Program-made: the position numbers and the translations under genes
In this document: in pieces, positions 28,446 to 48,972 of the stretch
Layout: each line of letters opens with the position of its first letter
How positions within the stretch are numbered: position 1 is the first letter of the stretch
The notes under the pieces: generated by a model
The model's database searches: none
Told to the model about the DNA's origin: nothing
The model's input: the letters and a program-made list of their open reading frames with translations, nothing else
Assembly: GCA_026936335.1 (NCBI GenBank)
Contig: JAPMXV010000074.1
Span: 124,001-188,000 of the forward strand
Source of the DNA: Mantamonas sphyraenae STR306
Taxonomy: Eukaryota > Protista > CRuMs
Reading direction: 5' to 3'
Length of the DNA stretch: 64,000 bases

Positions 28446-31400
28446 CTAAACTCCGTCATTGTCTTCTTCTGCCGCTTCCAGAGAGCCCATCGACCCTGCT
28501 CTCTCCCCACGCAGCTCTTCCAGATGCAGCTGCAGATCCACAACCACCACACGCAGTTCTTCCAACTCCTTGCCAGATGACGACGATGACCCCATCCCGT
28601 CCATCTCCTCCAGCGTCTGTGCCACCATCGATCGCACGGCGTCCATGTCTGCTGTACCCCTGGCCATTTGTTTCACCTGCAGCTCTGTCACCCAGCCCAG
28701 CAGCTGTGGATACTGCTTTGCCACTTTCTTGATCGCTTTCCATGACTTGCCCAGCCGCCGTTCCATGCTTCCGACACGCTCCTCCATGTCTTTTCGCCAC
28801 GCTTGCAGTTCCTTCAGTGCATCGTTGTCATCCAGCACACGTCCATACAGCAGCGCATGTGTATGCAAGCTGACCATGTGCACCATGCATCGCCCACAGT
28901 TCTCTTTCTCAACCTCCACCAGCGTAGACATATCCACACGCAACGTGTGCTGTGCCCAATCCATCCGCAACACCTCCTCAACATTCCCACTGCCCACACA
29001 CACGTGACACAGTGGATAGCACCGCATGCTCCCAGTCAGTCCGTCGCACAGCCCGCTCTCGGCCGCCAGCCGTCGCAAAAGCACCTCCACCTGTCCCATC
29101 GTCTCTGCCACCCCACGCCACGAGTCTTGCGCAACCACAACGTCCATGTACCGCGAGTGTGGCTCATGCACAACCACAATGTGCGGCGCATTCGCTGGCC
29201 ACACGTGCATCCAGTTGGTGTGCACGTGCTCGATGTCGATTCCTTCCGGGTATGCCTCAATCAGCCTCACCTGCACCAGGTTGAACAGCGCAGGTGGCAG
29301 CATGTGCCAATTCTCTGCCTGCCATGCCTCATCCTGCTCCTGCTCCTCGTCATCCCCTTCTCCTTCCCGGCCCGTCACCACCCACACAAACCGACGTCCA
29401 ATCCGACACCCGTTCCCACCCATCCACTCCCCAGGCATCTCCGTCTCCACCGTCCGCAGAAACGGAAACACAAGCGTGTCTGTCCCCACCCGTGCGCACA
29501 TCTCCACCTCACACAGCAGCTCCAGCAACACATCCGCCACCCCATCCTCATCACCTCCGTCACCTCCTCCTCCCCAAATCTTCCCATGCAGCTCCGCCAC
29601 CTGCTCTCGCAATCCATCATCCCATTTCAACAGCCCATGGTGCTTCCCCTCCGCAATCTGGTCCTCTTTGTCCAGCTCCTGCACCTCTGCACCGCTCACA
29701 AAGCCTCCCATCAGCTTCGCCAGCCACACAGGGTCCACCACAACCACCCCTGCCCCTCTGTGCCACACCACCTCCTGCATGTGGTGCAGTTCCTCCAGCG
29801 ATGCGGCAAAGATCCGCCCGCTCTTGCTCGGAAAATGCTCCTGTAGCTTCTCATTCCTCTTGACCATCTTCTCCAGTTCCTCCACACGCATCCACGGCTG
29901 CTCCATCCCACCATTCTTCCGCAGTCCCTGCACATACTTCTGCAGCTCCACTGTCCCGCGTGGCACCATCCTCCTCTCTGCCAGTGCCACACTCGCATCC
30001 TCCAAACTGCCCAACAACCCATCCACGTTGTCCTTCCACACATCCCCATCTACCACAAACACTCCCTTCTCTGCATCCATCCGCAGCTGCTCGTATCTCT
30101 TGCTTTCCTTCCACCCTTCCACCCACCCTTTCACCATCCCACATGCCTCTTCCCGATCCATCCTCTCCCCCACCTTCACCTTCTCTCCCAGATCTGCATG
30201 TGTCACCACAAACCACATCTGCGGCTTCTTCTTCCCTGCCACCTTGGGTGCCACCTTGCTCGCCACCATGTCCAGCCACACCTCCAGCTCCCCACGTGCT
30301 GCCTCCATGTCCACCCTGTGTCCACCTTCCACTGCATCCCACGCCACCATCGATGCCACCAGCACAAACACCCCGCCCTGGCCCATCAACAGGTACTGGT
30401 GGCCCACCCAGTACTCTGCCTGTCCGCCATAGTCACTGATACGCACACGCACATCCCCATCCCTCAGATCAAACTCATACACATCCATGCTGTGTGTCGC
30501 ATCCGTCGTCCTCTCCTCGCTGTCTAGCTTGCGTTTGGCTGTGCGCCACCTGAAGAACACCTTGCCCCACTCTCCCCACGAGCTGTTCCGCTTCATCGTG
30601 TCAATCAACGTCGTCTTGCCCTGTCCACCATGTCCCAGCACCATCCAGTTGACCCATTCCCACGCCGTGTCCATCCGTCCCAGATACTCCACCACCGCTT
30701 GCGCTCCTTTCTTCACCACAAACCCAGGCACATCGTCCAACGCCTCCTCGTGCTCCAGCAGCAAGTGCTCCAACTTCCCGAGATTCTCCATTGCTTGTCT
30801 GGGCAACACGCTGATGCCTGATCTCCGCAGATCCAGGACACGCAGATCCGCACACTGGCCAATCTCCTCAGGAAGCTCTGTCACATCACACTCACTCTCA
30901 GCCACCAAACACAGCGCCTGAGCTTGGATGCACCGAGCAGAGGACAGCTCAGCAGCCAACTGCTGCGATGTGGAGAACGACACAAGGCCATCCCGCTCAG
31001 CCCAGGCACCCAGCATGGCCAAATGTGTCGACGGGTGTCTGCTTGCTGCGATGTCCAGTGGAGTCTCTCCATAACCGGATTTGACAGTGATACTTGCACC
31101 ACGAGCGATGAGTAGCATTGCAATTTCTGTGAACCCACTCTCTGCAGCATTGAACAACGGTGTTCGTCCGTACTCATCTGCTTTGTCCACCTTTGCTCCC
31201 CTGTCCAACAGCATCTTTGCCGTCTCTGTGTGCCCATCGCGTGCTGCACTGTGCAACGGTGTCCTCCCGTGCTTACGGGGCTTGTCCACAAGTGCTCCCC
31301 AGTCGAGCAGCATCGTAGCAGTTTCTGTGTGTCCGTTTTCTGCTGCAAGGTGCAACGGTGTCGACCCGGTCCACCGCGCTTTCTCCACCTGTGCTCCCCT

Positions 31401-31766
31401 GTCCAGCAGTATCGTCGCCGTCTCTGTGTGCCCGTTCCTTGATGCATTGAGCAACGGCGTCCACCCGTCCCCGTCCGCCTTGTCCACCTCTGCTCCCCTG
31501 TCCAGCAGCAGCTTTGCCGTCTCTGTGTGCCCGTACTTTGCTGCAACATGCAACGGTATCGCTCCGTCGCCCCTCCTCGTGTTCACCTCTGCTCCCCTAT
31601 CCAGCAGTAGCTTTGCCGCAGTAGTTTGCCCCCGTTGCACCGCGTGGTGCAACGCTGTCCATCCTCGCCAACCCTCGTCGTTCACATCTGCACCCCGATC
31701 AATCAACTCCTCCATTACACGAGTATCACCCCACCTCACTGCTTCAATCAGCTCTGTGTCGCTCAT
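28446..31766 (-). CDS. Roco protein A: ankyrin (N-cap + 6 + C-cap) - short LRR - Roc GTPase - COR - coiled coil
   Basis: ANK GxTPLHxAA; LRR LPEEIGQCADLRVLDLRRSGISVLP; linker VPGFVVKKGAQAVVEYL; Roc G1 GHGGQGKTT, G2 DATHSMDV, G3 DYGGQAEYWVGHQYLL, G4 VVTHAD; COR LEELHH...VVVDPVWLAKLM, LVFPFLR, LPPALFNLVQVRL. Intronless, stop TAG. Confidence 0.9.
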   Translation of the reverse strand: MSDTELIEAVRWGDTRVMEELIDRGADVNDEGWRGWTALHHAVQRGQTTAAKLLLDRGAEVNTRRGDGAIPLHVAAKYGHTETAKLLLDRGAEVDKADGDGWTPLLNASRNGHTETATILLDRGAQVEKARWTGSTPLHLAAENGHTETATMLLDWGALVDKPRKHGRTPLHSAARDGHTETAKMLLDRGAKVDKADEYGRTPLFNAAESGFTEIAMLLIARGASITVKSGYGETPLDIAASRHPSTHLAMLGAWAERDGLVSFSTSQQLAAELSSARCIQAQALCLVAESECDVTELPEEIGQCADLRVLDLRRSGISVLPRQAMENLGKLEHLLLEHEEALDDVPGFVVKKGAQAVVEYLGRMDTAWEWVNWMVLGHGGQGKTTLIDTMKRNSSWGEWGKVFFRWRTAKRKLDSEERTTDATHSMDVYEFDLRDGDVRVRISDYGGQAEYWVGHQYLLMGQGGVFVLVASMVAWDAVEGGHRVDMEAARGELEVWLDMVASKVAPKVAGKKKPQMWFVVTHADLGEKVKVGERMDREEACGMVKGWVEGWKESKRYEQLRMDAEKGVFVVDGDVWKDNVDGLLGSLEDASVALAERRMVPRGTVELQKYVQGLRKNGGMEQPWMRVEELEKMVKRNEKLQEHFPSKSGRIFAASLEELHHMQEVVWHRGAGVVVVDPVWLAKLMGGFVSGAEVQELDKEDQIAEGKHHGLLKWDDGLREQVAELHGKIWGGGGDGGDEDGVADVLLELLCEVEMCARVGTDTLVFPFLRTVETEMPGEWMGGNGCRIGRRFVWVVTGREGEGDDEEQEQDEAWQAENWHMLPPALFNLVQVRLIEAYPEGIDIEHVHTNWMHVWPANAPHIVVVHEPHSRYMDVVVAQDSWRGVAETMGQVEVLLRRLAAESGLCDGLTGSMRCYPLCHVCVGSGNVEEVLRMDWAQHTLRVDMSTLVEVEKENCGRCMVHMVSLHTHALLYGRVLDDNDALKELQAWRKDMEERVGSMERRLGKSWKAIKKVAKQYPQLLGWVTELQVKQMARGTADMDAVRSMVAQTLEEMDGMGSSSSSGKELEELRVVVVDLQLHLEELRGERAGSMGSLEAAEEDNDGV

Positions 31767-32729
31767 CCTCCAGTTCTGCCCCACACGTCAGCCTTCCAAC
31801 CTCCCTCCCAAACGCCCACTCCCACACTCACACCCTCTCCTCCCCACCAACACATTGCACATTGTTCCCACTCACCTTTCACAATCCAATTGCCCCTCCC
31901 TGCGCACCTAGCATCCATTCCCTTTCCCTCTCTGCTCCTCTGTTCCCTCCCACTCCCAATCACCCCATTGCCACCCAACCCCCACCAGCCCTTTCCGTCT
32001 CTCATTCTTCAATCCTTCCCGTTCTGCTTCTCCTCCCCCCGGCATACCTCCATCGCAAGTGCCACCCCCACCCGGCAACTGCCAGCACACGCCTCACAGC
32101 CTTCCTCATCGAGGATTCCCACACTCTAAACCACGCTATTTCATCTTGAAACACCCTTCATCCACCCCTGGCGATGTCACGAGTCAACGGCGACGTGTGC
32201 TTCGATCTGCTCAGAGCTGGCACTGTAGATCAATATCCCAAACACCCTCATCAGCCTCCTGTCCTGCCACAACGTGCTGCCACTGCCATCATACTCATCC
32301 AGTGTGTCCACCTCGCCGATCAAGCACACAAACTGATACAGCAGTGCAACAGGGAACAGCAGCTGCCACTGCATCCACCCCAAACACCTCCACCATGCAC
32401 TTGCTGCACATTCAGTGAGTGCCACAATCTCACCTTTGCACACAATCCTCTCATCACACCGTACCACTGCCCCAGCCGTCCCTCACATGTCAGCACACAC
32501 AATCCCTCTTCCCACCCTCACATCCCACACGATCCCCCCCCCACCCCTCGCAATCAACTCCATGCCAAACCAACACACTCTCCACACCTCACGCGCGTGT
32601 ATCAATCTCAAACTACGGCAGAAAGCAGGGGGCAATCTTTGTTCTTGCTCTCTCCCTCGGTCTCTCTCTCTCTGCCCACACTGGATACAAGCAGCAGCAG
32701 CAGCAGCAGCAGCTTCACAGCTGTTCCAC

Positions 32730-33215
32730 TTACTCCTCCCACTCATCAGCAGAGTCCTCCTCCTCCTCATCGGAGCTGGAGCCCTCAGAGTAGTCATCCA
32801 CATCCTCAATGTCAGACTGCAGCAGACGCGGGCTGAACACAGCTGCCGTGGCCACGGGCATACCGCCACCGTACTGAGTGCGGAACGTACCGTCGGCCTT
32901 CTGGTGCGGCCACACGCCAGCCTTCTCCATTGTGTAGCGCACGTTGCGGAACTTCTCGCGGAAGTTGTAGTACGCCTGGCCCACCTTGGTCTGCGAGAAC
33001 TTCTTGCCAAACTCAGCACCCAGCTTCTGGCGCAGCGCCGTCTTGGCCTTGTCACCGTACTTCATCACCTGCTTCTTCAGGAAGTCGCGGGCGTCAAAGT
33101 TCTCCTTGGCCACAATCTTGTTGACCGAGTTCATCACCTCACCGTACTTCTGCGAGATCATCTGGAAGGTCTTGCTCTTGGACAGCGACTCACGGATGCG
33201 GGCCAGCACACCGTT
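32730..33215 (-). pseudogene. Duplicated 3' fragment of the cationic secreted gene (copy 1), frame intact
   Basis: Matches 45066-45551 with only three substitutions that I could see. Lacks the signal peptide and upstream exons. Confidence 0.8.
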
Positions 33216-33264
33216 GGTCACACAGTCGACGGTGGTGGACCTGAGGGCATTCTGTGGGCTTTTG

Positions 33265-34095: not shown

Positions 34096-37000
34096 TTACA
34101 CTCCTTCCTCTTCTTCTTCTTCACCCTCCTCCTCTACTGCTTCTCCTGATCCTGATTCCTCCGTCCCTGCTCTCTCCCCTCGCAGCTCTTCCAGATGCAG
34201 CTGCAGATCCACAACCACCACACGCAGTTCTTCCAACTCCTTGCCAGATGACGACGATGACCCCATCCCGTCCATCTCCTCCAGCGTCTGTGCCACCATC
34301 GATCGCACTGCGTCCATGTCTGCAGTGCCCCCGGCCCTGTGCTTCACCTGCAGCTCTGTCACCCAGCCAAGCAGCTGTGGATACTGCTTTGCCACTTTCT
34401 TGATCGCTTTCCATGACTTGCCCAGCCGCCGTTCCATGCTTCCGACACGCTCCTCCATGTCTTTCATCCTCGTTTGCAGTTCCATCAGTGCATCGTTGTC
34501 ATCCAGCACACGTCCATACAGCAGCGCTTGTGTATGCAGGTTGACTTTGTGCACCCTGCATGACCCGCACTTCTCCTTCTTCACCTCTGCCAACTCATGC
34601 ACATCCACACGCAGCCCATGCATCCCCCAGTCCATCCGCAACACCTCATCCACCTCTCCACTTGCCAAACACCGGTGACAGAGCGGATAGCACCTCAGTC
34701 CACTGCCCAGTCCATCACACAGCCCACTCTCCTCGGCCACACTCCGCACAAGGGCCTCCACTTTGCCCATCGTCTCCACCGCATCAGCCCATCCATCACT
34801 CGCCACCACAACGTCCACATACCGTGTGTGTGGCTCATGCACAGCCACAATGTGCGGTGCATCCCTGGGCCACACGTGCATCCAGTTCACATGCACCTGC
34901 TCTGGCTCCTCCACCCCGTCTGGGAATGCCTCAATCAGCCGCACTTGCACCAGATTGAAGAGAGCAGGAGGCAGCATGTGCCACTTCTCTGCCTGCCATG
35001 CCTCATCCTGCTCCTGCTCCTGCTCCTCCTCCCCATCATCTCCTTCCCCTCCCTCCACCACCCACACAAACCGCCGTCCAATCCGACACCCGTTCCCTGC
35101 CATCCACTCCCCGGGCAGCTCCATCTCCACCGTCCGCAGAAACGGAAACACAAGTGTGTCTGTTCCCACACGTGCACACATCTCCACCTCACACAGCAGC
35201 TCCAGAAGCACATCCGCCACCCCATCCTCACCACCATCTCCTCCTCCTTCCCACAGCTCCCCATGCAGCCTCCCCACCTGCTTCCGCAATCCATCATCCC
35301 ATTGCACGAGCCCGTGATGCTTCCCCTCCGCAATCTGCTTCCCTTTGTCCAACCCCTGAACCTCTGCACCACTCACAAACCCACCCATCAGCTTCGCCAG
35401 CCACACAGGGTCCACCACAACCACCCCTGCCCCTCTGTGCCACACCACCTCCTGCATGTGATGCAGTTCTTCCAGCGATGAATGAAAGATCCGCCCGCGC
35501 CTGCTCGGAAAGTGCTCCCGGATCTCCTCATTCCCCTTCACCATCGCCTCTAGTTCCTCCTCACGCATCCACGGCTGCTCCATCCCACCACTCTCCCGCA
35601 GTCCTTGCACGAACCTCTGCAGTTCCACCGTCCCGCGTGGCACCATCCTGTCCTCTGCCAGTGCCACACTCGCTTCCTCCAGACTGCCCAACAGCCCATC
35701 CACGTTGCCCTTCCACACATCCCCATCCACAACAAACACTCCCTTCTCCCTGTCCATCCGCAGCTGCTCGTACCTCTTGCTCTCCTTCCACCCTTCCACC
35801 CACCCTTGCACCATCCCACGTGCATCCTCCCGATCCATCCTCTCCCCCACCTTCACCTTCTCTCCCAGATCTGCATGCGTCAGCACAAACCACATCTGCG
35901 GTTTCTTCTTCCCTGCCACCTTGGATGCCACCTTGCTCGCCACCATGTCCAGCCACACCTCCAGCTCCCCACGCGCCGCCTCCATGTCCAACCTGTGCCC
36001 ACCTGCCACTGCATCCCACGCCACCATCGATGCCACCAGCACAAACACCCCGCCCTGGCCCATCAACAGGTACTGGTGGCCCACCCAGTACTCTGCCTGT
36101 CCGCCATAGTCACTAATACGCACACGCACATCCCCATCCCTCAGATCAAACTCATACACATCCATGCTGTGTGTCGCATCCGTCGTCCTCTCCTCCTTGT
36201 CCAGTTTCTGCTTCCGTCTCCTCCGTCTGAAAACCACTCGCCTCCTCTCCTTCCACGAGCTATTCCGCTTCATCGTGTCAATCAACGTCGTCTTGCCCTG
36301 TCCACCATGTCCCAGCACCATCCAGTTGACCCATTCCCATGCCGTGTCCATCCGTCGCAGATACTCTACCACCGCCTTCCCTCCCTTCTTCACCACAAAC
36401 CCAGGCACATCATCCAACGCCTCGTCATGCTCCAGTCGGAGCCACTGAAGCTCTTTCAAGCTGGCCATTGTCTGCCTGGGCAACACGCTAATGCCTGATC
36501 TGCGCAGATCCAGGACACGCAGCTCCACGCACAGGCCAATCTCCTCAGGCAGTTCTGTCACACCACTGTCACTCCCAGCAACCAGACACAGCGCCTGAGC
36601 TTGGATGCAACGATCAGAGGAAAGCTCAGCAGCCAACTGCTGCGATGTGGAGAATGACACAAGGCCATCCCGCTCAGCCCAGGCACCCAGCATGGCCAGA
36701 TGTGTCGACGAGTGCCTGCTTGCTGCGATGTCGAGTGGGGATTCTCCATTCATGTTTCTGACAGTGGCATCTGCACCACGAGCGATGAGAAGCGTCGCCG
36801 TCTCTGTGTGTCCGCTGTGTGCTGCTAGGTGCAACGGTGTCCGTCCGTCCCCATCCGTCTTGTCCACCTCTGCTCCCTTGTCCAGCAGAGATGCCGCCGT
36901 CTCAGTGTGCCCGTTTGATACTGCAATGTACAACGGGGTCCATCCGACCCCATCCGTCTTGTTCACCTCAGCTCCCCTGTCCAGCAGCATCGTCGAAGTC

Positions 37001-37539
37001 TCTGTGTACCCGTTCTGTGCTGCTCTGTGCAACGGTGTCCGTCCATCCCCATCCGTCTTGTCCACCTCTGCTCCCCTTTCCAGCAGCATTGACGCCGTCT
37101 CTGTGCGCCCGTTCTGTGCTGCTTTGTGCAACGGTGTCCGTCCGTACACATCCGTCTTGTCCTCTGCTCCCCTTTCCAGCAGCATTGACGCCGTCTCTGT
37201 GTGTCCGTTGTGTGCTGCAATGTGCAACGGTGTCCGTCCGTACACATCCGTCTTGTCCACCTCTGCTCCACTGTCCAGCAGCATTGTAACTATCCCCAGG
37301 GGACCCTTGAATACTGCAAAGTGCAAAGGTGTCGACCCGTCCCTCTCCGTCTTGTCCACCTCTGCTCCCCTGTCCAGCAGCAGCTTCGCCGCGTTGGTTT
37401 TCCCCTCCCACACCGCGTGGTGCAACGCTGTCCACCGATCCTCATCCTGTTCGTTCACATCTGCACCCCCATCAATCAAATTCTCCATTGCACTCATATC
37501 CTCCCTCCTCACTGCTCTCATCAGCTCTGTGTCCCTCAT
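34096..37539 (-). CDS. Roco protein B: ankyrin (N-cap + 7 + C-cap) - LRR - Roc - COR - coiled coil
   Basis: Same motifs as copy A. The ATG at 37539 (MRDTELMRAV) aligns with MSDTELIEAV of copy A. Stop TAA. Confidence 0.9.
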   Translation of the reverse strand: MRDTELMRAVRREDMSAMENLIDGGADVNEQDEDRWTALHHAVWEGKTNAAKLLLDRGAEVDKTERDGSTPLHFAVFKGPLGIVTMLLDSGAEVDKTDVYGRTPLHIAAHNGHTETASMLLERGAEDKTDVYGRTPLHKAAQNGRTETASMLLERGAEVDKTDGDGRTPLHRAAQNGYTETSTMLLDRGAEVNKTDGVGWTPLYIAVSNGHTETAASLLDKGAEVDKTDGDGRTPLHLAAHSGHTETATLLIARGADATVRNMNGESPLDIAASRHSSTHLAMLGAWAERDGLVSFSTSQQLAAELSSDRCIQAQALCLVAGSDSGVTELPEEIGLCVELRVLDLRRSGISVLPRQTMASLKELQWLRLEHDEALDDVPGFVVKKGGKAVVEYLRRMDTAWEWVNWMVLGHGGQGKTTLIDTMKRNSSWKERRRVVFRRRRRKQKLDKEERTTDATHSMDVYEFDLRDGDVRVRISDYGGQAEYWVGHQYLLMGQGGVFVLVASMVAWDAVAGGHRLDMEAARGELEVWLDMVASKVASKVAGKKKPQMWFVLTHADLGEKVKVGERMDREDARGMVQGWVEGWKESKRYEQLRMDREKGVFVVDGDVWKGNVDGLLGSLEEASVALAEDRMVPRGTVELQRFVQGLRESGGMEQPWMREEELEAMVKGNEEIREHFPSRRGRIFHSSLEELHHMQEVVWHRGAGVVVVDPVWLAKLMGGFVSGAEVQGLDKGKQIAEGKHHGLVQWDDGLRKQVGRLHGELWEGGGDGGEDGVADVLLELLCEVEMCARVGTDTLVFPFLRTVEMELPGEWMAGNGCRIGRRFVWVVEGGEGDDGEEEQEQEQDEAWQAEKWHMLPPALFNLVQVRLIEAFPDGVEEPEQVHVNWMHVWPRDAPHIVAVHEPHTRYVDVVVASDGWADAVETMGKVEALVRSVAEESGLCDGLGSGLRCYPLCHRCLASGEVDEVLRMDWGMHGLRVDVHELAEVKKEKCGSCRVHKVNLHTQALLYGRVLDDNDALMELQTRMKDMEERVGSMERRLGKSWKAIKKVAKQYPQLLGWVTELQVKHRAGGTADMDAVRSMVAQTLEEMDGMGSSSSSGKELEELRVVVVDLQLHLEELRGERAGTEESGSGEAVEEEGEEEEEEGV

Positions 37540-38522
37540 TCTTTCTCGCTTGCTGCCCCCGACGTCAGCAGTCCAATTTCTCTCCCCAACGCCCACACTC
37601 ACACTCACCCTCTCCTCCCCACCATCACATTGCACATTCTTCCCACTCACCTTCCACAATCCAATTGCCCCTCCCTGCGCACCTTGCATCCATTCCCCTC
37701 CTCTCTGTTCCTCCGTCTCCTCCCACTCCCAATCACCCCATTGCCACCCAAACCCCACCAGCCCCTTCCCTCTTTCGTTGTTCACTCCTTCCCGTTCTGC
37801 TTCTCCTACCCCGGCCGTGTCTCCATTTCAAGCTACACCCACCCAGCAACTGCCAGCATCCCCCTCACAGCCTTCCTGACTGACATTGGATTCCCACACA
37901 CTAAACCACGCTATTTCATCTTGAAAAACCCTTCATCCACCCCTGCGGATGTCACGAGTCAACGGCGAAGTGTGTTTCGATCTGCTCCGATCTGGCAATG
38001 TTGATCAACATCCCACCCAACCTCATCTGCCTCATGACCTGCCCCAACGTGCTTCCACTGCCATCATAATCACCCAGTGTGTCCACCTCGCCGGACAAGC
38101 ACACAAACGGAAGCAGCAGTGAACATGGAGCAGCACCTGCCACTGCCTCGATCCCAAACAGCTCCACCATGCACTTGCTGCACATTCAGTTGAGAGCCAC
38201 AATCTCACCTTTGCACACAATCCTCACATCACACCGTACCACTGCCCCAGCCGTCCCTCACATGTCAGCACACACGATCCCTCTTCCCACCCTCACCCCC
38301 ACACCCACCCCACCCATCTCCCCCATCCCCCCACCCAACCCCCCCAATCAACTCCATGCCAAACCAACACACTCTCCACACCTCAAGCGCGTGGATCAAT
38401 CTCAAACTACGGCAGAAAGTGGGGGGCAATCTTTGTTCTTGCTCTCTCCCTCGGTCTCTCTCTCTCTGCCCACACTGGATACAAGCAGCAGCAGCAGCTT
38501 CACAGCTTCACAGCTGTTCCAC

Positions 38523-39008
38523 TTACTCCTCCCACTCATCAACAGAGTCCTCCTCCTCCTCATCGGAGCTGGAGCCCTCAGAGTAGTCATCCACATCCTC
38601 AATGTCCGACTGCAGCAGACGCGGGCTGAACACAGCTGCCGTGGCCACGGGCATACCGCCACCGTACTGAGTGCGGAACGTACCGTCGGCCTTCTGGTGC
38701 GGCCACACGCCAGCCTTCTCCATTGTGTAGCGCACGTTGCGGAACTTCTCGCGGAAGTTGTAGTACGCCTGGCCCACCTTGGTCTGCGAGAACTTCTTGC
38801 CAAACTCAGCACCCAGCTTCTGGCGCAGCGCCGTCTTGGCCTTGTCACCGTACTTCATCACCTGCTTCTTCAGGAAGTCGCGGGCGTCAAAGTTCTCCTT
38901 GGCCACAATCTTGTTGACCGAGTTCATCACCTCACCGTACTTCTGCGAGATCATCTGGAAGGTCTTGCTCTTGGACAGCGACTCACGGATGCGGCCCAGC
39001 ACACCGTT
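38523..39008 (-). pseudogene. Duplicated 3' fragment of the cationic secreted gene (copy 2), frame intact
   Basis: Matches 45066-45551 with two visible substitutions. Confidence 0.8.
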
Positions 39009-39057
39009 GGTCACACAGTCGACGGTGGTGGACCTGAGGGCATTCTGTGGGCTTTTG

Positions 39058-39880: not shown

Positions 39881-42800
39881 TCACACCCCTTCATCATCTT
39901 CATCTTCATCCTCCTCCTCTGCCACTTCTCCGGATTCCTCCGTCCCTGCTCTCTCCCCTCGCAGCTCTTCCAGATGCAGCTGCAGATCCACAACCACCAC
40001 ACGCAGTTCTTCCAACTCCTTGCCAGATGACGACGATGACCCCATCCCGTCCATCTCCTCCAGCGTCTGTGCCACCATCGATCGCACTGCGTCCATGTCT
40101 GCTGTGCCCCCGGCCCTGTGCTTCACCTGCAGCTCTGTCACCCAGCCAAGCAGCTGTGGATACTGCTTTGCCACTTTCTTGATCGCTTTCCATGACTTGC
40201 CCAGCCGCCGTTCCATGCTCCCAACACGCTCCTCCATGTCTTTCATCCTTGTTTGCAGTTCCATCAGTGCATCTTTGTCATCCAACACACGTCCATACAG
40301 CAGCGCCTGTGTATGCAGGTTGACTTTGTGCACCCTGCATGAACCACACTTCTCTTTCTCCACCTCTGCCAACTCCTGCACATCCACACGCAGCCCGTGC
40401 ATCCCCCAGTCCATCCGCAGCACCTCATCCACCTCTCCACTTGCCAAACACCGGTGACAGAGCGGATAGCACCTCAGTCCACTGCCCAGTCCATCACACA
40501 GCCCACTCTCCTCGGCCACACTCCGCACAAGGGCCTCCAATTTGCCCATCGTCTCCACCACATCCGCCCATCCAGCACTCGCCACCACAACGTCCACATA
40601 CCGTGTGTGTGGCTCATGCACAGCCACAATGTGCGGTGCATCCACAGGCCACACGTGCATCCAGTTCACATGCACCTGCTCGGGCTCCTCCACCCCGTCT
40701 GGGAATGCTTCAATCAGTCGCACCTGCACCAGATTGAAGAGAGCAGGAGGCAGCATGTGCCACTTCTCTGCCTGCCATGCCTCGTCCTGCTCCTCCTGCT
40801 CCTCATTCCCTTCCTGATCAGTCACCACCCACACAAACCGCCGTCCAATCCGACACCCGTTCTCTGCCATCCACTCCCCGGGCAGTTCCATCTTCACCGT
40901 CCGCAGAAATGGAAACACAAGCGTATCTGTCCCCACACGTGCACACATCTCCACCTCACACAGCAGCTCCAGCAGCACATCCGCCACCCCATCCTCACTC
41001 GTACATCCCCACAGCCCCCCATGCAACCTCCCCACCTGCTTCCTCAATCCATCATCCCACTGCACCAGCCCATGGTGTTTCCCCTCCCCAATCTGCTTCC
41101 CTTTGTTCAGCCCTTGCACATGTTCTCCGCTCACAAACCCTCCCATCAGCTTCGCCAGCCACACAGGATCAAGTACAACCACCCCTGCTCCCCTGTGCCA
41201 CACCACCTCTTGCATGTGGTGCAGTTCCTCCAGCGATGAATGAAAGATCCGCCCTGAACTGCTCGGAAAGTGCTCTTTCGTCACCCAATACCTCTTGACC
41301 AGTTGCATCAGCCTCTCATCCCGAATCCAAGGTTTGGCAAGCATGCTACTCTCCCGCAGTCCCTGCACATACTTCTGCAGCTCCACCGTCCCGCGTGGCA
41401 CCATCCTCTCCTCTGCCAGTGCCACACTCGCATCCTCCAAACTGCCCAACAACCCATCCACGTTGTCCTTCCACACATCCCCATCTACCACAAACACTCC
41501 CTTCTCTGCATCCATCCGCAGCTGCTCGTACCTCTTGCTCTCCTTCCACCCTTCCACCCACCCTTTCAACATCCCACATGCATCCTCCCGATCCATCCTC
41601 TCCCCCACCTTCACCTTCTCTCCCAGATCTGCATGTGTCACCACAAACCACATCTGCGGCTTCTTCTTCCCTGCCACCTTGGGTGCCACCTTGCTCGCCA
41701 CCATGTCCAGCCACACCTCCAGCTCCCCACGTGCTGCCTCCATGTCCACCCTGTGTCCACCTTCCACTGCATCCCACGCCACCATCGATGCCACCAGCAC
41801 AAACACCCCGCCCTGGCCCATCAACAGGTACTGGTGGCCCACCCAGTACTCTGCCTGTCCACCATAGTCACTGATACGCACACGCACATCTCCACCCTTC
41901 AGATCAAACTCATACACATCCATGCTGTGTGTCGCATCCGTCGTCCTCTCCTCCTTGTCCAGCTTGAGTTTGGCTGTGCGCCACCTGAAGAACACCTTGC
42001 CCCACTCTTCCCACGAGCTATTCCGCTTCATCGTGTCAATCAGTGTCGTTTTGCCCTGTCCACCATGTCCCAGCACCATCCAGTTCACCCACTCCCACGC
42101 AGTATCCATCCGTGCCAGATATTCCACCACCGCCTTCCCTCCTTTCTTCACCACAAACCCAGGCACATCATCCAACGCCTCATCATGCTCCAGCAACAAG
42201 TGCTCCAACTTCCCGAGATTCTCCATTGCCTGCCTGGGCAACACGCTGATGCCCGATCTGCGCAGATCCAGGACACGCAGCTCCACACACATGCCAATCT
42301 CTTCAGGAAGCTCTGACACATCGCTTTCACTCTCAGCAACCAAACACAGCGCCTGAGGTTGGATACAACGAGCAGACGACAGCTCAGCAGCCAACTGCTG
42401 CGATGTGGAGAACGACACAAGGCCATCGCGCTCAGCCCAGGCACCCAGCATGGCCAAATGTGTCGACGGGTGCCTGGTTGCTGCGATGTTGAGTGCAGAC
42501 CCTCCAAACGGGGTTGTGACAGTGACATCTGCACCACGAGCGATGAGAAGCGTCACCGTCTCTGTCTGTCCGTTCGCTACCGCAATGTGCAACGGTGTCC
42601 GTCCGTTCTCATCCGCCTTGTCCACCTGTGCTCCCCTGTCCAGCAGCATCGTCGCAGTCTCTGTGTACCCTTTCTCTGCTGCAACGTACAAAGGTGTCCG
42701 TCCGTTCTCATCCGCCTTGTCCACCTGTGCTCCCCTGTCCAGCAGCATCATCACCATCTCTGTGTTTCCTTTCTTTGCTGCTGTGTACAACGGTGTCCAC

Positions 42801-44089
42801 CCAATGCTGTCCGCCTTGTCCACCTCTGCTCCCCTGTCCAGCAGCATCGTCGCCGTCTCTGTGTACCCTTTCTCTGCTGCAACGTACAACGGTGTCCATC
42901 CCTTCCCCCACGCCTTGTCCACCTCTGCTCCCCCGTCCAGCAGCATCGTCGCCGTCTCTGTGTACCCTTTCTCTGCTGCTTTGTACAACGGTGTCCACGT
43001 CCCCCCCACCTTTTTCACCTGTGCTCCCCTGTCCAGCAGCATCATCACCGTCTTTGTGTGCCCGTGCTCTGCTGCAATGTACAAAGGTGTCCGTCCGAAA
43101 TCATCCCTCTTGTCCACCTCTGCTCCCCTGTCCAGCAGCATCGTCGCCGTCTCGGTGTGCCCGTGCTGTGCTGCTTTGTACAACGGTGTCCACCCGTTCA
43201 TATTCGCCTTGTCCACATCTGCTCCCCTGTTCAGCAGCATCGTCGCCGTCTCTGTGTGCCCGTTCTCTGCTGCGATGTACAACGGTGTCCTCCCGTTCTC
43301 ATCAATCTTGTCCAACGCTGTTCCCCTTTCCAGCAGCACTGTCACCGTCTCTGTGTGCCCCTCCTGTGCTGCCATGTGCAACGGTGTCCTCCCGTCCTTC
43401 TCCACCTCGTCCATCTCTGCTCCCCTGTCCAGCAGCATCATCACAGTCTCTGTGTGTCCGTACCATGCTGCAATGTGCAACGGTGTCCACCCGTCCGTCC
43501 CCGCCTTGTCCACATCTGCACCCCTGTCCAGCAGCATCGCCGCAGTCTCCGTGTGCCCGTTCGATGCTGCACTGAATAGAGGTGTCCGTCCGTCCCTATC
43601 CATCTTGTCCACCTCTGCTCCCCTGTTCAGCAGCATCGTCGCCGTCTCTGTGTGCCCTTCCTGAGCTGCAATGTGTAACGGTATGGCTCCGTACTTCGTC
43701 GGCATGTCCACTTCTGCTCCCCTGTCCAGCAGCATCATCACCGACTCTGTGTGCCCGTTCTGTGCTGCCATGTACAACGGTGTCCTCCCGCTCCTCTCCG
43801 CCTTGTCCAACGCTGTTCCTCTTTCCAGCAGCATCGTCACTATCCCCGTGTGACCCTTCAATGCTGCAAAGTGCAACGGTGTCCTCCCGTTCCTCTCCGT
43901 CTTGTCCACCTCTGTTCCCCTGTCCAGCAGCAACTTTGCCGCGTTTGTTTTCCCCTCCCACCCCGCGTGGTGCAACGCTGTCCACCCATCCTCATCCTGT
44001 TCGTTCACATCTGCACCCCCATCAATCAACTCCTCCATTACACGATTATCACCCCACCTCACTGCTTTCATCAGCTCTGCGTCGCTCAT
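39881..44089 (-). CDS. Roco protein C: ankyrin (N-cap + 15 + C-cap) - LRR - Roc - COR - coiled coil
   Basis: Same motifs as A and B. It is 296 aa longer than A, matching about nine extra 33-aa ankyrin units. ATG 44089, stop TGA. Confidence 0.9.
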   Translation of the reverse strand: MSDAELMKAVRWGDNRVMEELIDGGADVNEQDEDGWTALHHAGWEGKTNAAKLLLDRGTEVDKTERNGRTPLHFAALKGHTGIVTMLLERGTALDKAERSGRTPLYMAAQNGHTESVMMLLDRGAEVDMPTKYGAIPLHIAAQEGHTETATMLLNRGAEVDKMDRDGRTPLFSAASNGHTETAAMLLDRGADVDKAGTDGWTPLHIAAWYGHTETVMMLLDRGAEMDEVEKDGRTPLHMAAQEGHTETVTVLLERGTALDKIDENGRTPLYIAAENGHTETATMLLNRGADVDKANMNGWTPLYKAAQHGHTETATMLLDRGAEVDKRDDFGRTPLYIAAEHGHTKTVMMLLDRGAQVKKVGGTWTPLYKAAEKGYTETATMLLDGGAEVDKAWGKGWTPLYVAAEKGYTETATMLLDRGAEVDKADSIGWTPLYTAAKKGNTEMVMMLLDRGAQVDKADENGRTPLYVAAEKGYTETATMLLDRGAQVDKADENGRTPLHIAVANGQTETVTLLIARGADVTVTTPFGGSALNIAATRHPSTHLAMLGAWAERDGLVSFSTSQQLAAELSSARCIQPQALCLVAESESDVSELPEEIGMCVELRVLDLRRSGISVLPRQAMENLGKLEHLLLEHDEALDDVPGFVVKKGGKAVVEYLARMDTAWEWVNWMVLGHGGQGKTTLIDTMKRNSSWEEWGKVFFRWRTAKLKLDKEERTTDATHSMDVYEFDLKGGDVRVRISDYGGQAEYWVGHQYLLMGQGGVFVLVASMVAWDAVEGGHRVDMEAARGELEVWLDMVASKVAPKVAGKKKPQMWFVVTHADLGEKVKVGERMDREDACGMLKGWVEGWKESKRYEQLRMDAEKGVFVVDGDVWKDNVDGLLGSLEDASVALAEERMVPRGTVELQKYVQGLRESSMLAKPWIRDERLMQLVKRYWVTKEHFPSSSGRIFHSSLEELHHMQEVVWHRGAGVVVLDPVWLAKLMGGFVSGEHVQGLNKGKQIGEGKHHGLVQWDDGLRKQVGRLHGGLWGCTSEDGVADVLLELLCEVEMCARVGTDTLVFPFLRTVKMELPGEWMAENGCRIGRRFVWVVTDQEGNEEQEEQDEAWQAEKWHMLPPALFNLVQVRLIEAFPDGVEEPEQVHVNWMHVWPVDAPHIVAVHEPHTRYVDVVVASAGWADVVETMGKLEALVRSVAEESGLCDGLGSGLRCYPLCHRCLASGEVDEVLRMDWGMHGLRVDVQELAEVEKEKCGSCRVHKVNLHTQALLYGRVLDDKDALMELQTRMKDMEERVGSMERRLGKSWKAIKKVAKQYPQLLGWVTELQVKHRAGGTADMDAVRSMVAQTLEEMDGMGSSSSSGKELEELRVVVVDLQLHLEELRGERAGTEESGEVAEEEDEDEDDEGV

Positions 44090-45065
44090 CCTCCAGTTCT
44101 GCCCCACACGTCAGCCCCTCCAATCTCCCTCCCCAACGCCCACTCTCACACCCTCTCCCCCTCACCAACACATTCCACATTCTTCCCACTCACCTTCCAC
44201 AATCCAATTGTCCCTCCCTGCGCACCTTGCATCCATTCCCCTCCTCTCTGCTCCTCCGTTGCCTCCCACTCCCAATCACCCCATTGCCATCCAACCCCCA
44301 CCCACCAGCCCCTTCCTTCTCTCATTCTTCACTCCTTCCCATTCTGCTTCCCCTACCCCCGCCGTGTCTCCATCGCAACAGCCACCCGCACCGGCAACTG
44401 CCAGCATCCCTCACAGCCTTCGTCATTGACATCGGGCACCCACGCAAGAAACCAAGCAATAACGTCTTGCAACACGCTTCATCCACCCCTGGCGATGTCA
44501 CGTGTCAACGGCGACGTGTTTCGATCTGCTCAGAGCTGGCAATGTTGATCAACATTTCCAAACACCCCCATCAGCCTCATGACCTGCCACAACGTGCTGC
44601 CACTGCCATCATACTCAACCAGTGTGTCCACCTCGCCGGACAAGCACACAAACTGATACAGCAATGCAACGGGGAACAGGGACAGCAGCGGCCACTGCCG
44701 CGACCCCAACACCTCCACCATGCACTTGATGCACATTCAGTCAAGTGCCACAATCTCACCTTTGCACACAATCCTCTCATCACACCGTACCACTGCCCCA
44801 GCCGTCCCTCCCATCTCAGCACACACAATCCCTATTCCCACCCTCACCACCCCACCCATCTCCCCAACCCCCCAACCCCCCCACCATATCAACTCCATGC
44901 CAACCCAACACACTCTCCACACCTCACGCGCGTGAATCAATCTCAAACCACGGCAGAAAGCAGGGGGCAATCTTTGTTCTTGCTCTCTCCCTCGGTCTCT
45001 CTCTCTCTCTGACCATACTGGATACAAGCAGCAGCAGCAGCTTCACAGCTTCACAGCTGATCCAC

Positions 45066-46646
45066 TTACTCCTCCCACTCATCAGCAGAGTCCTCCTCCT
45101 CCTCATCGGAGCTGGAGCCCTCAGAGTAGTCATCCACATCCTCAATGTCCGACTGCAGCAGACGCGGGCTGAACCCAGCTGCCGTGGCCACGGGCATACC
45201 GCCACCGTACTGAGTGCGGAACGTACCGTCGGCCTTCTGGTGCGGCCACACGCCAGCCTTCTCCATTGTGTAGCGCACGTTGCGGAACTTCTCGCGGAAG
45301 TTGTAGTACGCCTGGCCCACCTTGGTCTGCGAGAACTTCTTGCCAAACTCAGCACCCAGCTTCTGGCGCAGCGCCGTCTTGGCCTTGTCACCGTACTTCA
45401 TCACCTGCTTCTTCAGGAAGTCGCGGGCGTCAAAGTTCTCCTTGGCCACAATCTTGTTGACCGAGTTCATCACCTCACCGTACTTCTGCGAGATCATCTG
45501 GAAGGTCTTGCTCTTGGACAGCGACTCACGGATGCGGCCCAGCACACCGTTCTTCAGAGAGTCGAACTTGTACTTGAGGGCGCCGGTGATCTTGCCCTTG
45601 ATGTTGTTGAACGTGGAGATACCCTTGTTCAGCAGCTGGCCAACCTTGCCGCGGAGCAGGTTCTGGCCGGCCTTGAACTTGCCGATGGCACCCTTGATGA
45701 AGCCGAACACGTTGCCGCTCTTCACCTTGTCGTACACAGCCTTGGCCTTGCGCACAAAGCCGATGGCAGTCTTGACAAACGGGCTGCTGGCGATCTTGCC
45801 AAAGATGGACGAGCCCTTGATGGCGCCCATCACAACACCACCGATGCCCGTGAAGGACAGAGCAGTGGTCACGATGCCAAACAGCGGCGAGTTCATCACC
45901 TTCTTGGCCACCTGTACAAGACGAGAACAGCACGCCACAGTGTGCACATGGTGTGTTAGCGCCGCAAACACGCAAACGTGTGCTGGACCCCTTTTTTTTT
46001 CCCTCGCATCCACATGCTCGTTTTCCCCGCCACACACAACTTACCGAGATGACCTTGCCGGCGACACGGCCGATGCCACGAGCGACACGGCCCACGAAGC
46101 GACCAACACGGCGGAACGCACTGCAGAGGGCACACAGCGAGGTGGGGCGTCAGCAACAACGGCGGAAAAGGGGTGCGGCGAAAGAGGGCCAAAGAAAAAA
46201 ACCGAGCCGAAAGAAAAACCACGGCGCACGTTTGGGGCTGGCACAGACGTGTGGCTGCCCTGCCACACTCTGGCATGCAAGGGCTGTCTAGACAGGGATG
46301 CAACCTACCGTCCAATGCGGCGGAAGAACTGATCGTTGTCCTCCACATCGTCCGAGTCGTCGTTGTCGCTGCGCTCCTCTTCCTCCGACTGCTCCTCGGC
46401 CTCGCTGGCCTCGGAGAGGTTGTCGTCGGTAAAGTCGGCGTCAGCCTTGGTCTCGTCCATCAGACCGGTGTCCCAGTCCGACTCGTCCGAAGAGTCCTGT
46501 GTGGGTGGTGATGGAGAAAACGAGGCGTGTGTGTGTGAGTGAGAGCGGCCCTTCAGATTCCGCACCCTCCCGTTGTCACAACGTACGACGGCAGCCAGGG
46601 CAGCGCCAAGAATGCAGAGAATCACAAACGCAAACTTCAACTGCAT
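45066..46646 (-). CDS. Secreted prepro-protein: signal peptide, acidic pro-region, cationic amphipathic Gly/Lys/Arg-rich body, acidic tail (389 aa, 4 exons); antimicrobial/pore-forming-like
   Basis: Exons 46646-46587, 46496-46309, 46120-46045 and 45911-45066, with donors GTACGT, GTAGGT, GTAAGT and CAG acceptors in phases 0/2/0. Product: MQLKFAFVILCILGAALAAV-DSSDESD...DVEDNDQ-FFRRIGRAFRRVGRFVGRVARGIGRVAGKVISVAKKVMNSPLFGIV...DEEEEDSADEWEE. The gene model is well supported; the function is inferred. Confidence 0.8.
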
Positions 46647-47963: not shown

Positions 47964-48106
47964 AGTACAGGTGGAAAGGGTGTGTGGTGGCACCGAGTGG
48001 CAAAGACGTGTGATTCACTCGCACGCCGAACAGAGTGCCCAAGACCCCCGTTGACGTCCATCAATCACCCCACCACCTTCACCACTACCCAATGAAACCA
48101 TTTCCA

Positions 48107-48886
48107 TTAGCACTGTTTGGTGCTGACGTCCCCCACGCCCTTGTAGGCCTTGAGATCGGCAATGATTTTCTTGACGCGCTCCTCGTTCACGCCAAAGTCG
48201 CCTCGACCAAGCCTGGACTGGCTCTGGACCCACAGCTTCTGGCAGCCGATGGCCACGTAGACATCGTCGGGATAGCCCATGACCTGAGTCAGGATCCTGG
48301 CATGCACAAAATCCTTGCGGTTTGTGATGAGCTCGGCCGTCGAGGGCAGGTTGGAGAGGATGGACACCACGGCGTCGTGCACCTTGTCGACGGTGGCGTT
48401 AAACACAGGTGGAGACAGGCCCTGGCCACGCATGGGATTGGTGGGTGCCACACGTGTGCAGTCGTAGGGCGCTTCCGCCTTGCGCAGACATTCCGAGGGA
48501 AAGCTGGTGACGCCTGCAGGGTCCGGTGCCAACAGGGGCACCAGGAAGAGAAGGGTGGTGAAGAGGAACATCACAATGGACAATGTGACCAGGCCACACG
48601 CTGCCTTGTCGTGTGTCTGTGTCTTGGACCAGCGACGCGTGGCCAGCAGCAGCATCGTCGTGGCAATCAGACTTCCTGCAGCCCATCCAATGCCAAACCA
48701 GTGCTCCCATTGGCTGGCCACCACCAACAACCCCACAGACACAATCACCTTGAGTGCCAATGTGACCAGAAGCACACGCTGCCTTCCGGTGCGCCGGGAA
48801 AAGAAGTTGCCATCACGATCGGCGTCGGCAAACAAGTCGGTGGCGCTGTCGCCATGCAATCCACGGTATGGTGCCCCTTTGCTCAT
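48107..48886 (-). CDS. DUF1499-family membrane protein (about 3 N-terminal TM helices)
   Basis: C-terminus FVHARILTQVMGYPDDVYV...VQSQSRLGRGDFGVNEERV matches the DUF1499 S-x-SR-x-G-x-x-D-x-GVN-x-x-R motif. Hydrophobic N-terminal segments. Confidence 0.8.
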   Translation of the reverse strand: MSKGAPYRGLHGDSATDLFADADRDGNFFSRRTGRQRVLLVTLALKVIVSVGLLVVASQWEHWFGIGWAAGSLIATTMLLLATRRWSKTQTHDKAACGLVTLSIVMFLFTTLLFLVPLLAPDPAGVTSFPSECLRKAEAPYDCTRVAPTNPMRGQGLSPPVFNATVDKVHDAVVSILSNLPSTAELITNRKDFVHARILTQVMGYPDDVYVAIGCQKLWVQSQSRLGRGDFGVNEERVKKIIADLKAYKGVGDVSTKQC

Positions 48887-48972
48887 TCTTCTCGAATCCT
48901 ATCCACAACTCACACAACACCACACAAGTTGCACCGGCGAGCGCTTGGCCAGCAAACGCAAGTGAGAGAGAG

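Follow-up and report, generated by a model that had tools for sequence, protein, structure and literature searches.

Tandemly duplicated genes for ankyrin-repeat Roco proteins in Mantamonas sphyraenae, a candidate sensor family with variable ankyrin arrays

Three neighbouring genes on the minus strand of the analysed window (64,000 nucleotides of a contig of Mantamonas sphyraenae STR306, numbered from its first letter) each encode an ankyrin (ANK) array with a fixed framework and a few highly variable positions, followed by a divergent Roco-type module. With a probability of roughly 60%, we propose that these arrays serve as the sensor domain in cytosolic Roco GTPases that form a tandemly duplicated family specific to the lineage. 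The genes, here called A, B and C, lie in open reading frames at 28446–31784, 34096–37785 and 39881–44107, and their homologous ATG codons (31766, 37539 and 44089, respectively) agree with the starts given in the original prediction. All three frames are intact (1100–1400 aa), and their units keep strictly to a 33-residue register apart from two of 32 residues. The domain order in A, B and C is N-cap, ANK(n), short LRR, Roc, COR-A, COR-B and coiled coil (Table 1), and neither a signal peptide nor an export motif can be seen at the N-termini of the ANK-Roco proteins.

Table 1. Features of the three ANK-Roco genes, in positions of the window
Feature	Position	Strand	Basis
Gene C, ANK(17)-LRR-Roc-COR-coiled coil, 1402 aa from ATG 44089	39881..44089	-	Uninterrupted ORF; Pfam Ank E 1e-129; hhalign to Roco proteins
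Gene C, N-terminal cap, two helices, ~30 aa	44000..44089	-	Kept in paralogues and ANK-only families; AF2 helices 3-12 and 15-23
Gene C, ankyrin array, 16 units past the cap; unit 0 cap-like, final two C-cap	42419..43999	-	TRF, alignment, AF2, Foldseek
Gene C, internal units 1-13, variable core; 99 bp each, one of 96 bp	42617..43900	-	Entropy and codon analyses
Gene C, short LRR segment between ANK array and G domain	42173..42328	-	Pfam LRR_14/LRR_8 below cutoff; PDB LRR proteins E 1.5e-7; aligned to Roco LRRs
Gene C, predicted Roc-type G domain; GHGGQGKT P-loop, DYGGQ.EYW..HQYLL, THAD G4	41564..42106	-	Invariant paralogue columns; hhalign to Roc
Gene C, COR-A/COR-B-like region	40250..41401	-	hhalign columns span template COR-A and COR-B; weak LRRK2 COR match, E 0.008
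Gene C, C-terminal helical, coiled-coil-like region with acidic tail	39884..40275	-	Long helices 720-829 in low-confidence model; weak Dynamitin match
Gene B, architecture as gene C, 8 ANK units, array ~36700-37539	34096..37539	-	ORF, Pfam, alignment
Gene A, architecture as gene C, 7 ANK units, array ~31020-31766	28446..31766	-	ORF, Pfam, alignment

The ankyrin nature of the repeats is evident from both sequence and predicted fold. The units carry the G-x-TPLH...GH...LL..GA motif, Pfam Ank families match the window genes with E values from 1e-53 to 1e-129, and in all three genes PF00023, PF12796 and PF13637 exceed their cutoffs by a wide margin, placing the arrays in the Ank clan. Tandem Repeats Finder reported 99-bp arrays at 31183–31618 (A), 36796–37382 (B) and 42551–43932 (C), the last with 14.0 copies and 79% matches. 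The AF2 model of the gene C array (pLDDT 88.6) is a continuous solenoid of 17 regular helix pairs, and its Foldseek matches include ankyrin-1 and ankyrin-B, at a probability of 1.00 and TM-scores reaching 0.78, as well as DARPins; the predicted fold is thus the helix-turn-helix plus beta-hairpin of ankyrin solenoids. Designed ankyrin proteins rank among the best matches of the arrays in both sequence and fold, and the modelled ANK domain is shown to be a continuous solenoid of consensus-like 33-residue units. When every unit is counted, A has 7, B 8 and C 17; the 6, 7 and 15 internal units claimed earlier are obtained if everything between the terminal caps is included, whereas a strict definition without the cap-adjacent units leaves 22 internal units in the window genes. 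Both ends of the array are conserved in the paralogues, with the N-cap and the first, TALH-type unit on one side and the two final units (LLIARGAD..., then SRHPSTHLAMLGAW) on the other, in keeping with the dedicated caps that had been proposed. In the first unit of gene B, R replaces the anchor G.

Within the units, variation is concentrated at a few positions. Shannon entropy in the window genes is highest at unit positions 1, 2, 3, 5, 10, 13, 14 and 33 (1.65–3.05 bits) and close to zero at G4, P7, L8, A11, G15, L23, L24 and G27, so that the predicted pattern of a fixed framework with variable beta-turn and inner-helix positions was recovered; across the whole family, seven of the eight top-entropy positions are the same, with position 29 in place of 14. 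The eight-residue signatures at the variable positions are distinct in all 22 internal window units. By homology to solved ankyrin libraries and by secondary structure rather than from coordinates, the variable positions probably lie on the concave face. The scaffold had also been described as conserved even at the DNA level. This holds, most strongly over unit positions 22–31, and a 31-mer quoted as recurrent occurs 19 times at three mismatches or fewer vs. none in shuffled sequences; however, the overall conservation is only moderate, with scaffold identities of 73–80% in protein and 75–79% in DNA.

The region downstream of the ANK array is, judged by profile comparison, a divergent but clear LRR-Roc-COR-A-COR-B module with a coiled coil. 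A single-sequence search of A, B and C with Pfam Roc (PF08477), COR-A (PF16095) and COR-B (PF25497) gave no match at E ≤ 0.01, and the family is evidently too divergent in sequence for Roc and COR to be recognized in this way. An hhalign comparison of the family alignment with eight Pfam-verified Roco proteins, on the other hand, gave a probability of 99.87% and an E value of 1.8e-31 over 540 columns, running from the LRR to the end of COR-B, and this profile–profile alignment shows a Ras-like G domain followed directly by COR, as in Roco proteins. The motifs GHGGQGKT (G1), DYGGQ (G3) and THAD (G4), which fit the patterns GxxxxGKT, DxxGQ and THxD, do not vary among 10 paralogues and line up with those of Roco proteins, and the predicted G1, G3 and G4 GTP-binding motifs of a Roco protein would therefore all be present. 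All eight of the profile-search matches that were scanned are LRR-Roc-COR-A-COR-B proteins, and the nearest Atlas clusters of the family are all Roco. A word-based homologue search with the Roc-COR part returned no matches, and in an exhaustive profile search the matches to other proteins covered no more than the LRR plus the first half of the G domain, with no close relative. The AF2 model of the LRR-Roc-COR part from a 10-sequence alignment was poor (pLDDT 48) and was left out of the fold search. Outside the repeats, the paralogues show dN/dS of 0.24–0.36 with GC3 of 0.68; purifying selection on the Roc-COR part is clear from these codon comparisons, and the genes therefore appear to be in use.

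At least eight close ANK-Roco paralogues, ranging from 5 to 25 units, are present in the 25-Mb genome, and the numbers found among them (5, 7, 8, 8, 15, 17 and 25) bear out the variable repeat number claimed in the original prediction. Amplification of units within arrays could likewise be seen: in part of the array at the paralogous C3 locus the units are 97–100% identical in DNA, and one adjacent pair in gene B is 95% identical. The concerted evolution of the scaffold that was also predicted is obvious at C3 but weak in the window genes, where the DNA identities are those given above, the internal units of gene C are 69–91% identical to one another, and similarity within genes is only slightly higher than that between genes (0.83 vs. 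0.78). Elsewhere in the genome, ANK-only genes form two tandem clusters, their 8 to 36 units being of the same type as the ankyrin unit of the ANK-Roco genes; these clusters had been overlooked in the original prediction. We also looked for recent unit exchange between these ANK-only families and the Roco family and saw no sign of it: the best pair reaches 91% DNA identity, and the median of the best matches is 83%.

Diversifying selection on the variable codons finds partial support. A codon likelihood model with one synonymous rate gave an omega of 2.1–2.5 at variable codons vs. 0.32 at the scaffold (likelihood ratio test, p from 2e-6 to 2e-9), with seven sites individually above 1, whereas the ANK-only families, analysed likewise as an internal control, gave 0.81 and 0.95. 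By the NG86 method, dN at variable sites is 0.6–0.8 vs. a scaffold dS of 0.20–0.26, and parsimony counts on the tree gave a ratio of about 2, also relative to synonymous sites interleaved with the variable codons. Site-wise binomial tests on the parsimony counts found position 2 alone significant and were replaced by likelihood tests; a single tree for the units is a simplification throughout, since repeats recombine. However, when the variable codons were given their own synonymous rate, this rate was about 2 and beta/alpha fell to 0.97–1.18, which is not significant. The codon comparisons thus show a framework under purifying selection, with an omega of about 0.3, and positions 1, 2, 3, 5, 10, 13, 14 and, less so, 33 changing at about twice the framework synonymous rate. 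Diversifying selection on the paratope, as originally predicted, is therefore obtained with a shared dS and lost with a separate one, and neutral variable codons beside a slower or homogenised framework fit as well as positive selection does.

Neutral repeat turnover is the foremost alternative, although we consider it somewhat unlikely overall. It would have slippage or unequal crossover expand ordinary ankyrin scaffolds while the exposed positions drift unconstrained (omega of about 1) and the framework is kept for folding and near the family consensus, with no selection for specificities. Besides the beta/alpha value of about 1 just described, it can draw on the omega of 0.8–0.95 in ANK-only families derived from the same ankyrin unit, on the fact that natural ankyrin repeats in general vary most at these positions (PMC4308713), and on the limited homogenisation of the window arrays at 75–79% DNA identity. 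It does not readily account for nonsynonymous change about 2-fold above framework synonymous change even with interleaved codons included, for the confinement of this excess to Roco-linked arrays, for a distinct signature in every one of the 22 window units, or for genes kept in use by purifying selection on Roc-COR. A repertoire of host- or partner-directed effectors, in which a parasite or symbiont would use ANK arrays to mimic host proteins, as in intracellular bacteria and plasmodiophorids, seems improbable: the genome does hold many expanded ankyrin families, and ankyrin effectors have expanded in Plasmodiophora with allelic diversification (bioRxiv 10.64898/2026.10.14.759018), but the N-termini described above carry no visible secretion or export signal and the LRR-Roc-COR fusion is typical of intracellular signalling proteins. 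The mitochondrial RNA polymerase of the organism, moreover, shares no more than 53% identity with any database protein, so that a sequenced plasmodiophorid represented there is not the source, and the Roco family has no relatives in the databases. It is very improbable that the repeat numbers and variants come from a mis-assembled (collapsed or expanded) tandem repeat or from decaying pseudogenes. Two family members are indeed interrupted, C3 by a frameshift within its array of near-identical units and C56b by one between the ANK array and Roc, and the short Logan contigs, which come from one study, are broken throughout the array; the same independent contigs nevertheless match unique pieces of the window genes exactly, and the window genes are long intact frames in strict register, with units distinct enough (69–91% identical) for unambiguous assembly and with the rest of each gene under purifying selection.

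In the preferred reading, that of a sensor family of Roco GTPases, arrays would gain and lose interior 99-bp units by tandem duplication and loss while the caps are kept. The arrays differ in unit number and order but share their caps, and growth and shrinkage are therefore placed in the interior; unequal recombination or replication slippage would yield such gain and loss. The ANK groove would then bind protein ligands, binding may be relayed to the Roc-COR GTPase switch, and the family as a whole could form a sensor repertoire with differing specificities, by analogy with fungal NLRs and the LRR-ROCOs of brown algae. A bolder version, which we regard as unlikely and offer tentatively, is an innate-immune-like repertoire of Roco receptors with a natural DARPin-type paratope in a deep-branching protist, in which units are added, removed and diversified for specificity and the ANK-only clusters serve as partners, decoys or a reservoir; it would be a third independent invention of a repeat-plus-NTPase receptor beside NLRs and brown-algal LRR-ROCOs. 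If the ankyrin face truly serves in recognition, the principle of a fixed solenoid, diversifying residues and an NTPase switch would extend to a Roco GTPase in an unexplored eukaryotic lineage, and the brown-algal idea of Roco proteins as immune-type receptors would gain support. If the variation is neutral, the locus would represent ordinary tandem repeat turnover in a multigene family. The very long natural consensus-like arrays, which reach 36 units and offer paratope variants by the hundred, may also be of use in protein engineering and in the study of repeat evolution.

A fixed framework, fast-changing binding-face residues and a variable unit count are receptor-like features that are known from fungi and from brown algae, though not combined as they are here. 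The ANK, TPR and WD repeats of fungal NLR-like STAND proteins are described as highly conserved internally (Dyrka et al. 2014, PMC4986451; citing Paoletti 2007, Chevanne 2010). As in fungal NLRs, a repeat solenoid with a near-constant framework is fused to an NTPase switch, the few hypervariable ANK positions fall on the inner helix and beta-hairpin and on the concave face (here by homology), and multigene families show unit shuffling and amplification, with 7 to more than 16 repeats in the fungal case; the proposed role in non-self recognition is also like that proposed here. Unlike in fungal NLRs, the switch is Roc-COR of a Roco GTPase rather than NACHT or NB-ARC, which sets the family outside that class, and the ANK array lies at the N-terminus, ahead of a short LRR, where that of the fungal proteins is C-terminal. 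Unit identity within genes (63–66% in the window genes and 81% in the C56 paralogue) lies below the fungal class threshold of at least 85% over at least 100 aa, with only part of C3 at 97–100% in DNA. The fungal class is also marked by positive selection at a few binding-face positions, for which the present arrays give an omega of 2.1–2.5 under a shared dS but a beta/alpha of about 1 under a separate one. Allelic polymorphism in repeat number has been shown in fungi, whereas the variation here, from 5 to 25 units, is known between paralogues.

A close parallel on the Roco side is the LRR-ROCO family of Ectocarpus (Zambounis et al. 2012, PMC3341825), likewise an expanded, clustered family that includes pseudogenes and whose N-terminal repeat domain varies in length and has variable residues on the concave face. 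For the Ectocarpus family, positive selection was supported from individually extracted repeats and an immune-receptor role was proposed, as in the bolder reading above. In Ectocarpus, however, the variable repeat is an LRR encoded by one 72-nt exon per repeat and shuffled as exons, whereas the present family varies in its ANK repeats, which form an uninterrupted 99-bp tandem array without introns in a single ORF, and has a short, conserved LRR. With LRRK1, LRRK2 and other ANK-LRR-Roc-COR proteins the family shares this domain order and the THxD-type G4, one database protein from the profile search (P0133) being ANK-LRR-Roc-COR-A. Unlike LRRK1 and LRRK2, the present family has a coiled-coil tail instead of a kinase or WD40 domain, consists of a tandem multigene family and has consensus-like ANK arrays of variable length.

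The arrays also resemble DARPin and ANK-N5C libraries in having an N-cap, n consensus units and a C-cap, with a framework near the ankyrin consensus and variation at largely the same positions. The DARPins of Binz et al. 2003 reportedly vary at positions 2, 3, 5, 13, 14 and 33, and the variable positions of ANK-N5C (2, 3, 5, 10, 13 and 33) were picked by entropy (PMC4308713). The coincidence with randomised DARPin positions, noted in the original prediction, is thus real, but it is partly circular because the libraries were designed from natural repeat variability, and it would be expected for any natural ankyrin protein. Unlike the designed libraries, these are natural proteins whose framework is similar but not identical between units (about 76%), whose positions 1 and 10 vary too, and whose arrays are far longer, reaching 25–36 units.

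Genes A, B and C, three neighbouring minus-strand paralogues, are intron-less ORFs with homologous start codons, and it is at these ATG positions that the original prediction had placed the three starts (table). In each gene, Tandem Repeats Finder detects a 99-bp tandem array at the 5′ end, with 14.0 copies and 79% matches in gene C, and a 31-mer previously singled out as recurrent occurs 19 times with no more than three mismatches, versus 0 in shuffles. In translation, the ankyrin (ANK) units keep a strict 33-residue register, except for two 32-residue units, and Pfam ankyrin models match the three arrays at E values of 1e-53 to 1e-129. Common to all three proteins are an N-cap made of two helices, a first unit of cap-like type and, C-terminally, two cap units; the totals, counting every unit, are 7 in A, 8 in B and 17 in C. 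The N-termini show no apparent signal peptide. Across window positions 20000–46000, a strong strand asymmetry is seen, in which the GC skew on the plus strand is −0.3 to −0.49 over minus-strand genes, so that the coding strand is markedly G-rich.

The region after the array yields only weak LRR matches with Pfam, and a PDB search with the non-ANK part brings up a weak hit on LRRK2's COR domain. The non-ANK part of ten paralogues was considered as an alignment, whose profile was run against 1.8 billion representatives; no close relative was found among these. All eight scanned matches whose alignment covers the LRR plus the G domain's first half are LRR-Roc-COR-A-COR-B proteins, one of which also carries ANK repeats. 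Profile–profile comparison with these Roco proteins aligns 540 columns, spanning LRR, Roc, COR-A and COR-B, at a probability of 99.87% (E = 1.8e-31). Every sequence in the ten-paralogue alignment carries the motifs GHGGQGKT, DYGGQ.EYW..HQYLL and THAD unchanged, and the language-model neighbours are all Roco clusters. Together, the profile–profile match, the motifs and the neighbours identify the window proteins as divergent Roco GTPases, in the order ANK(n), short LRR, Roc, COR and helical tail.

A search of the 25-Mb assembly (78 contigs) with the non-ANK part found at least 12 close paralogues, several of them ANK-bearing. One of these, C56, adjoins a broken copy, C56b, which is probably a pseudogene since its ANK and Roc-COR parts lie in different frames. 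The array of C3, which was read in its two frames without repair, contains a frameshift; either the gene is broken or the near-identical repeats were misassembled. In more distant members of the Roc-COR family, other N-terminal repeats replace these ANK units; contig C6, alongside C68, also holds such members. When only ANK units served as the query, two tandem clusters of ANK-only genes came to light; their N-cap and consensus unit are those of the Roco-linked arrays, and LRR-Roc-COR is absent. Recent exchange of units between the two families was rejected, as no pair of units exceeds 91% DNA identity (mean 72%), and the unit type is therefore common by descent. A mitochondrial RNA polymerase of the phage type is also encoded in the window and marks the genome as eukaryotic. 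Its best match in a database of 5.8 billion sequences is 53% identical, so no close relative of the organism is represented in that database, and the named matches are scattered among Naegleria, dictyostelids, red algae and plants. An affiliation with Plasmodiophora, which the ankyrin expansions, GC content and genome size had brought to mind, is not supported.

Table. Positions and make-up of the window features and of the family members on other contigs
Feature	Location	Strand	Description
Gene A ORF	28446–31784	minus	intron-less; start codon 31766
Gene B ORF	34096–37785	minus	intron-less; start codon 37539
Gene C ORF	39881–44107	minus	intron-less; start codon 44089
Roc-COR segment compared for pS, A	28449–30998	minus	
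Roc-COR segment compared for pS, B	34099–36675	minus	
Roc-COR segment compared for pS, C	39884–42433	minus	
Duplicated 3′ part of a neighbouring gene	32730–33221, 38523–39014, 45066–46037	minus	two 163-aa ORFs and the 323-aa ORF
Mitochondrial RNA polymerase	48035–52513	plus	phage-type
ANK-bearing paralogue C51			5 units
ANK-bearing paralogue C52			8 units
ANK-bearing paralogue C56			15 units
ANK-bearing paralogue C3	C3:339620–348500		25 units; frameshift between units 12 and 13
C56b	within C56:191000–199239		ANK part in 395-aa frame, Roc-COR part in 774-aa frame
C77, distant Roc-COR member			RNI-type 28-residue LRRs
C13, distant Roc-COR member			divergent ANK; 2119-aa frame
C68, distant Roc-COR members			five tandem genes, 1800–2000 aa
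ANK-only tandem cluster C67	C67:249183–260020		three genes, 28–36 units
ANK-only tandem cluster C51	C51:207792–222647		six genes, 8–34 units

For the ANK domain of gene C, AlphaFold gives a confident model (pLDDT 88.6) with 17 regular helix pairs. It is structurally most similar to the long ankyrin-1 and ankyrin-B solenoids (TM up to 0.78), with DARPins next, and a PDB sequence search of the domain agrees. Entropy was calculated for the 22 strictly internal window units and for 68 units representing the whole Roco-linked family. In both sets it is close to zero at G4, P7, L8, A11, G15, L23, L24 and G27. The eight positions of highest entropy in the window genes are 1, 2, 3, 5, 10, 13, 14 and 33, seven of which recur in the whole family, where 29 takes the place of 14. 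Since helix 1 spans unit positions 8–15 and helix 2 positions 18–26 in the gene C model, the variable residues are predicted to fall in the beta-turn (33, 1, 2, 3, 5) and, within the inner helix, on one of its sides (10, 13, 14, with i/i+3/i+4 spacing). The unusual feature is the contrast between framework identity, which is 73–80% between units of the window genes and 91% in C56, and identity at the variable positions, which is only 20–39%. All 22 window units, and 58 of the 68 family units, have distinct signatures at these positions. DARPins are randomised at positions 2, 3, 5, 13, 14 and 33. In the ANK-N5C library, positions 2, 3, 5, 10, 13 and 33 were randomised and form one continuous concave surface in the crystal structure (PMC4308713). 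The proposed likeness to DARPin libraries thus holds for the positions; however, there is some circularity in this agreement, since those positions were picked for the designs as the most variable in natural repeats (PMC4308713).

Diversifying selection on this face had also been proposed. With NG86 pooled over unit pairs, dN at the variable positions is 0.6–0.8 versus a framework-codon dS of 0.20–0.26 (ratio 2.6–3.9), and in unit pairs with zero synonymous framework difference, 20% of the non-synonymous variable sites still differ. Parsimony counts on the unit tree, also taken against the synonymous sites of interleaved framework codons, give a ratio of about 2. A purpose-built codon likelihood model (fixed FastTree topology, F3x4 frequencies, one synonymous rate) returns an omega of 0.32 for the framework and 2.1–2.5 for the variable class, for which the likelihood-ratio test against omega = 1 gives p = 2e-6 (window units) and 2e-9 (family); positions 1, 2, 3, 5, 10, 13 and 14, but not 33, individually exceed 1. 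For the ANK-only clusters, the same codon analysis returns 0.81 and 0.95 at the variable positions, showing that the method does not by itself yield omega > 1. However, when the variable class is given its own synonymous rate, this too comes to about 2, and beta/alpha becomes 0.97–1.18, which is not significant. Judged by the criterion of the original prediction, and within the limits set on all of these tests by multi-nucleotide codon changes and by recombination among units, the variable sites do exceed the synonymous variation of the framework, but a dN/dS of their own beyond 1 is not borne out. For the non-repeat region, dN/dS is 0.24–0.36 and dS 0.24–0.40, with a moderate GC3 of 0.68.

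At both ends, namely the cap, units 0 and 1, and the final two units, the arrays of B and C are colinear; their interiors differ. One adjacent pair of units in gene B is 95% identical in DNA, and the C3 array contains blocks of units that are 97–100% identical. Tandem unit duplication is thereby demonstrated, with very recent amplification at C3, and these data together bear out the predicted gain and loss of units. Concerted evolution is less clear: units of the window genes are 69–91% identical, and identity within genes (0.83) is only slightly above that between genes (0.78), so homogenisation in the strict sense is weak in these genes and the question is not settled. In the Roc-COR part, synonymous divergence among A, B and C is a mosaic, with windows of pS 0.00–0.10 alternating with windows of 0.4–0.5 in a pattern that differs from pair to pair, and the near-zero patches suggest gene conversion between the tandem paralogues. 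Behind each Roco gene lies a duplicate of a neighbouring gene's 3′ part; the two 163-aa ORFs differ hardly at all from the C-terminal half of the 323-aa ORF, at whose end there is an acidic Ser/Glu tail. It follows from these passenger copies that duplication of a segment about 5.7 kb long, truncated passenger included, gave rise to the three-gene array.

The original observation of ANK arrays with a conserved framework, variable positions and differing unit numbers is confirmed; of its interpretation, the architecture, the variable face and the gain and loss of units stand, whereas adaptive diversification, like concerted evolution, is not settled. Two known systems invite comparison. Fungal NLR-like proteins carry internally highly conserved ANK, TPR or WD repeats whose numbers vary among isolates (7 to >16 for ANK), with positive selection at about five concave-face positions (Dyrka et al. 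2014, PMC4986451). The LRR-ROCO proteins of Ectocarpus form an expanded, clustered family with repeat shuffling, pseudogenes and positive selection on the concave face, and the authors propose that it is an immune receptor family (Zambounis et al. 2012, PMC3341825). Unlike the fungal class, this ANK-Roco family falls below the 85% internal-identity criterion and lacks a NACHT or NB-ARC domain. By analogy it would work like both systems, but it belongs to neither; it joins the ANK mode of the fungal proteins to the Roco switch of the Ectocarpus family in intron-less tandem arrays.
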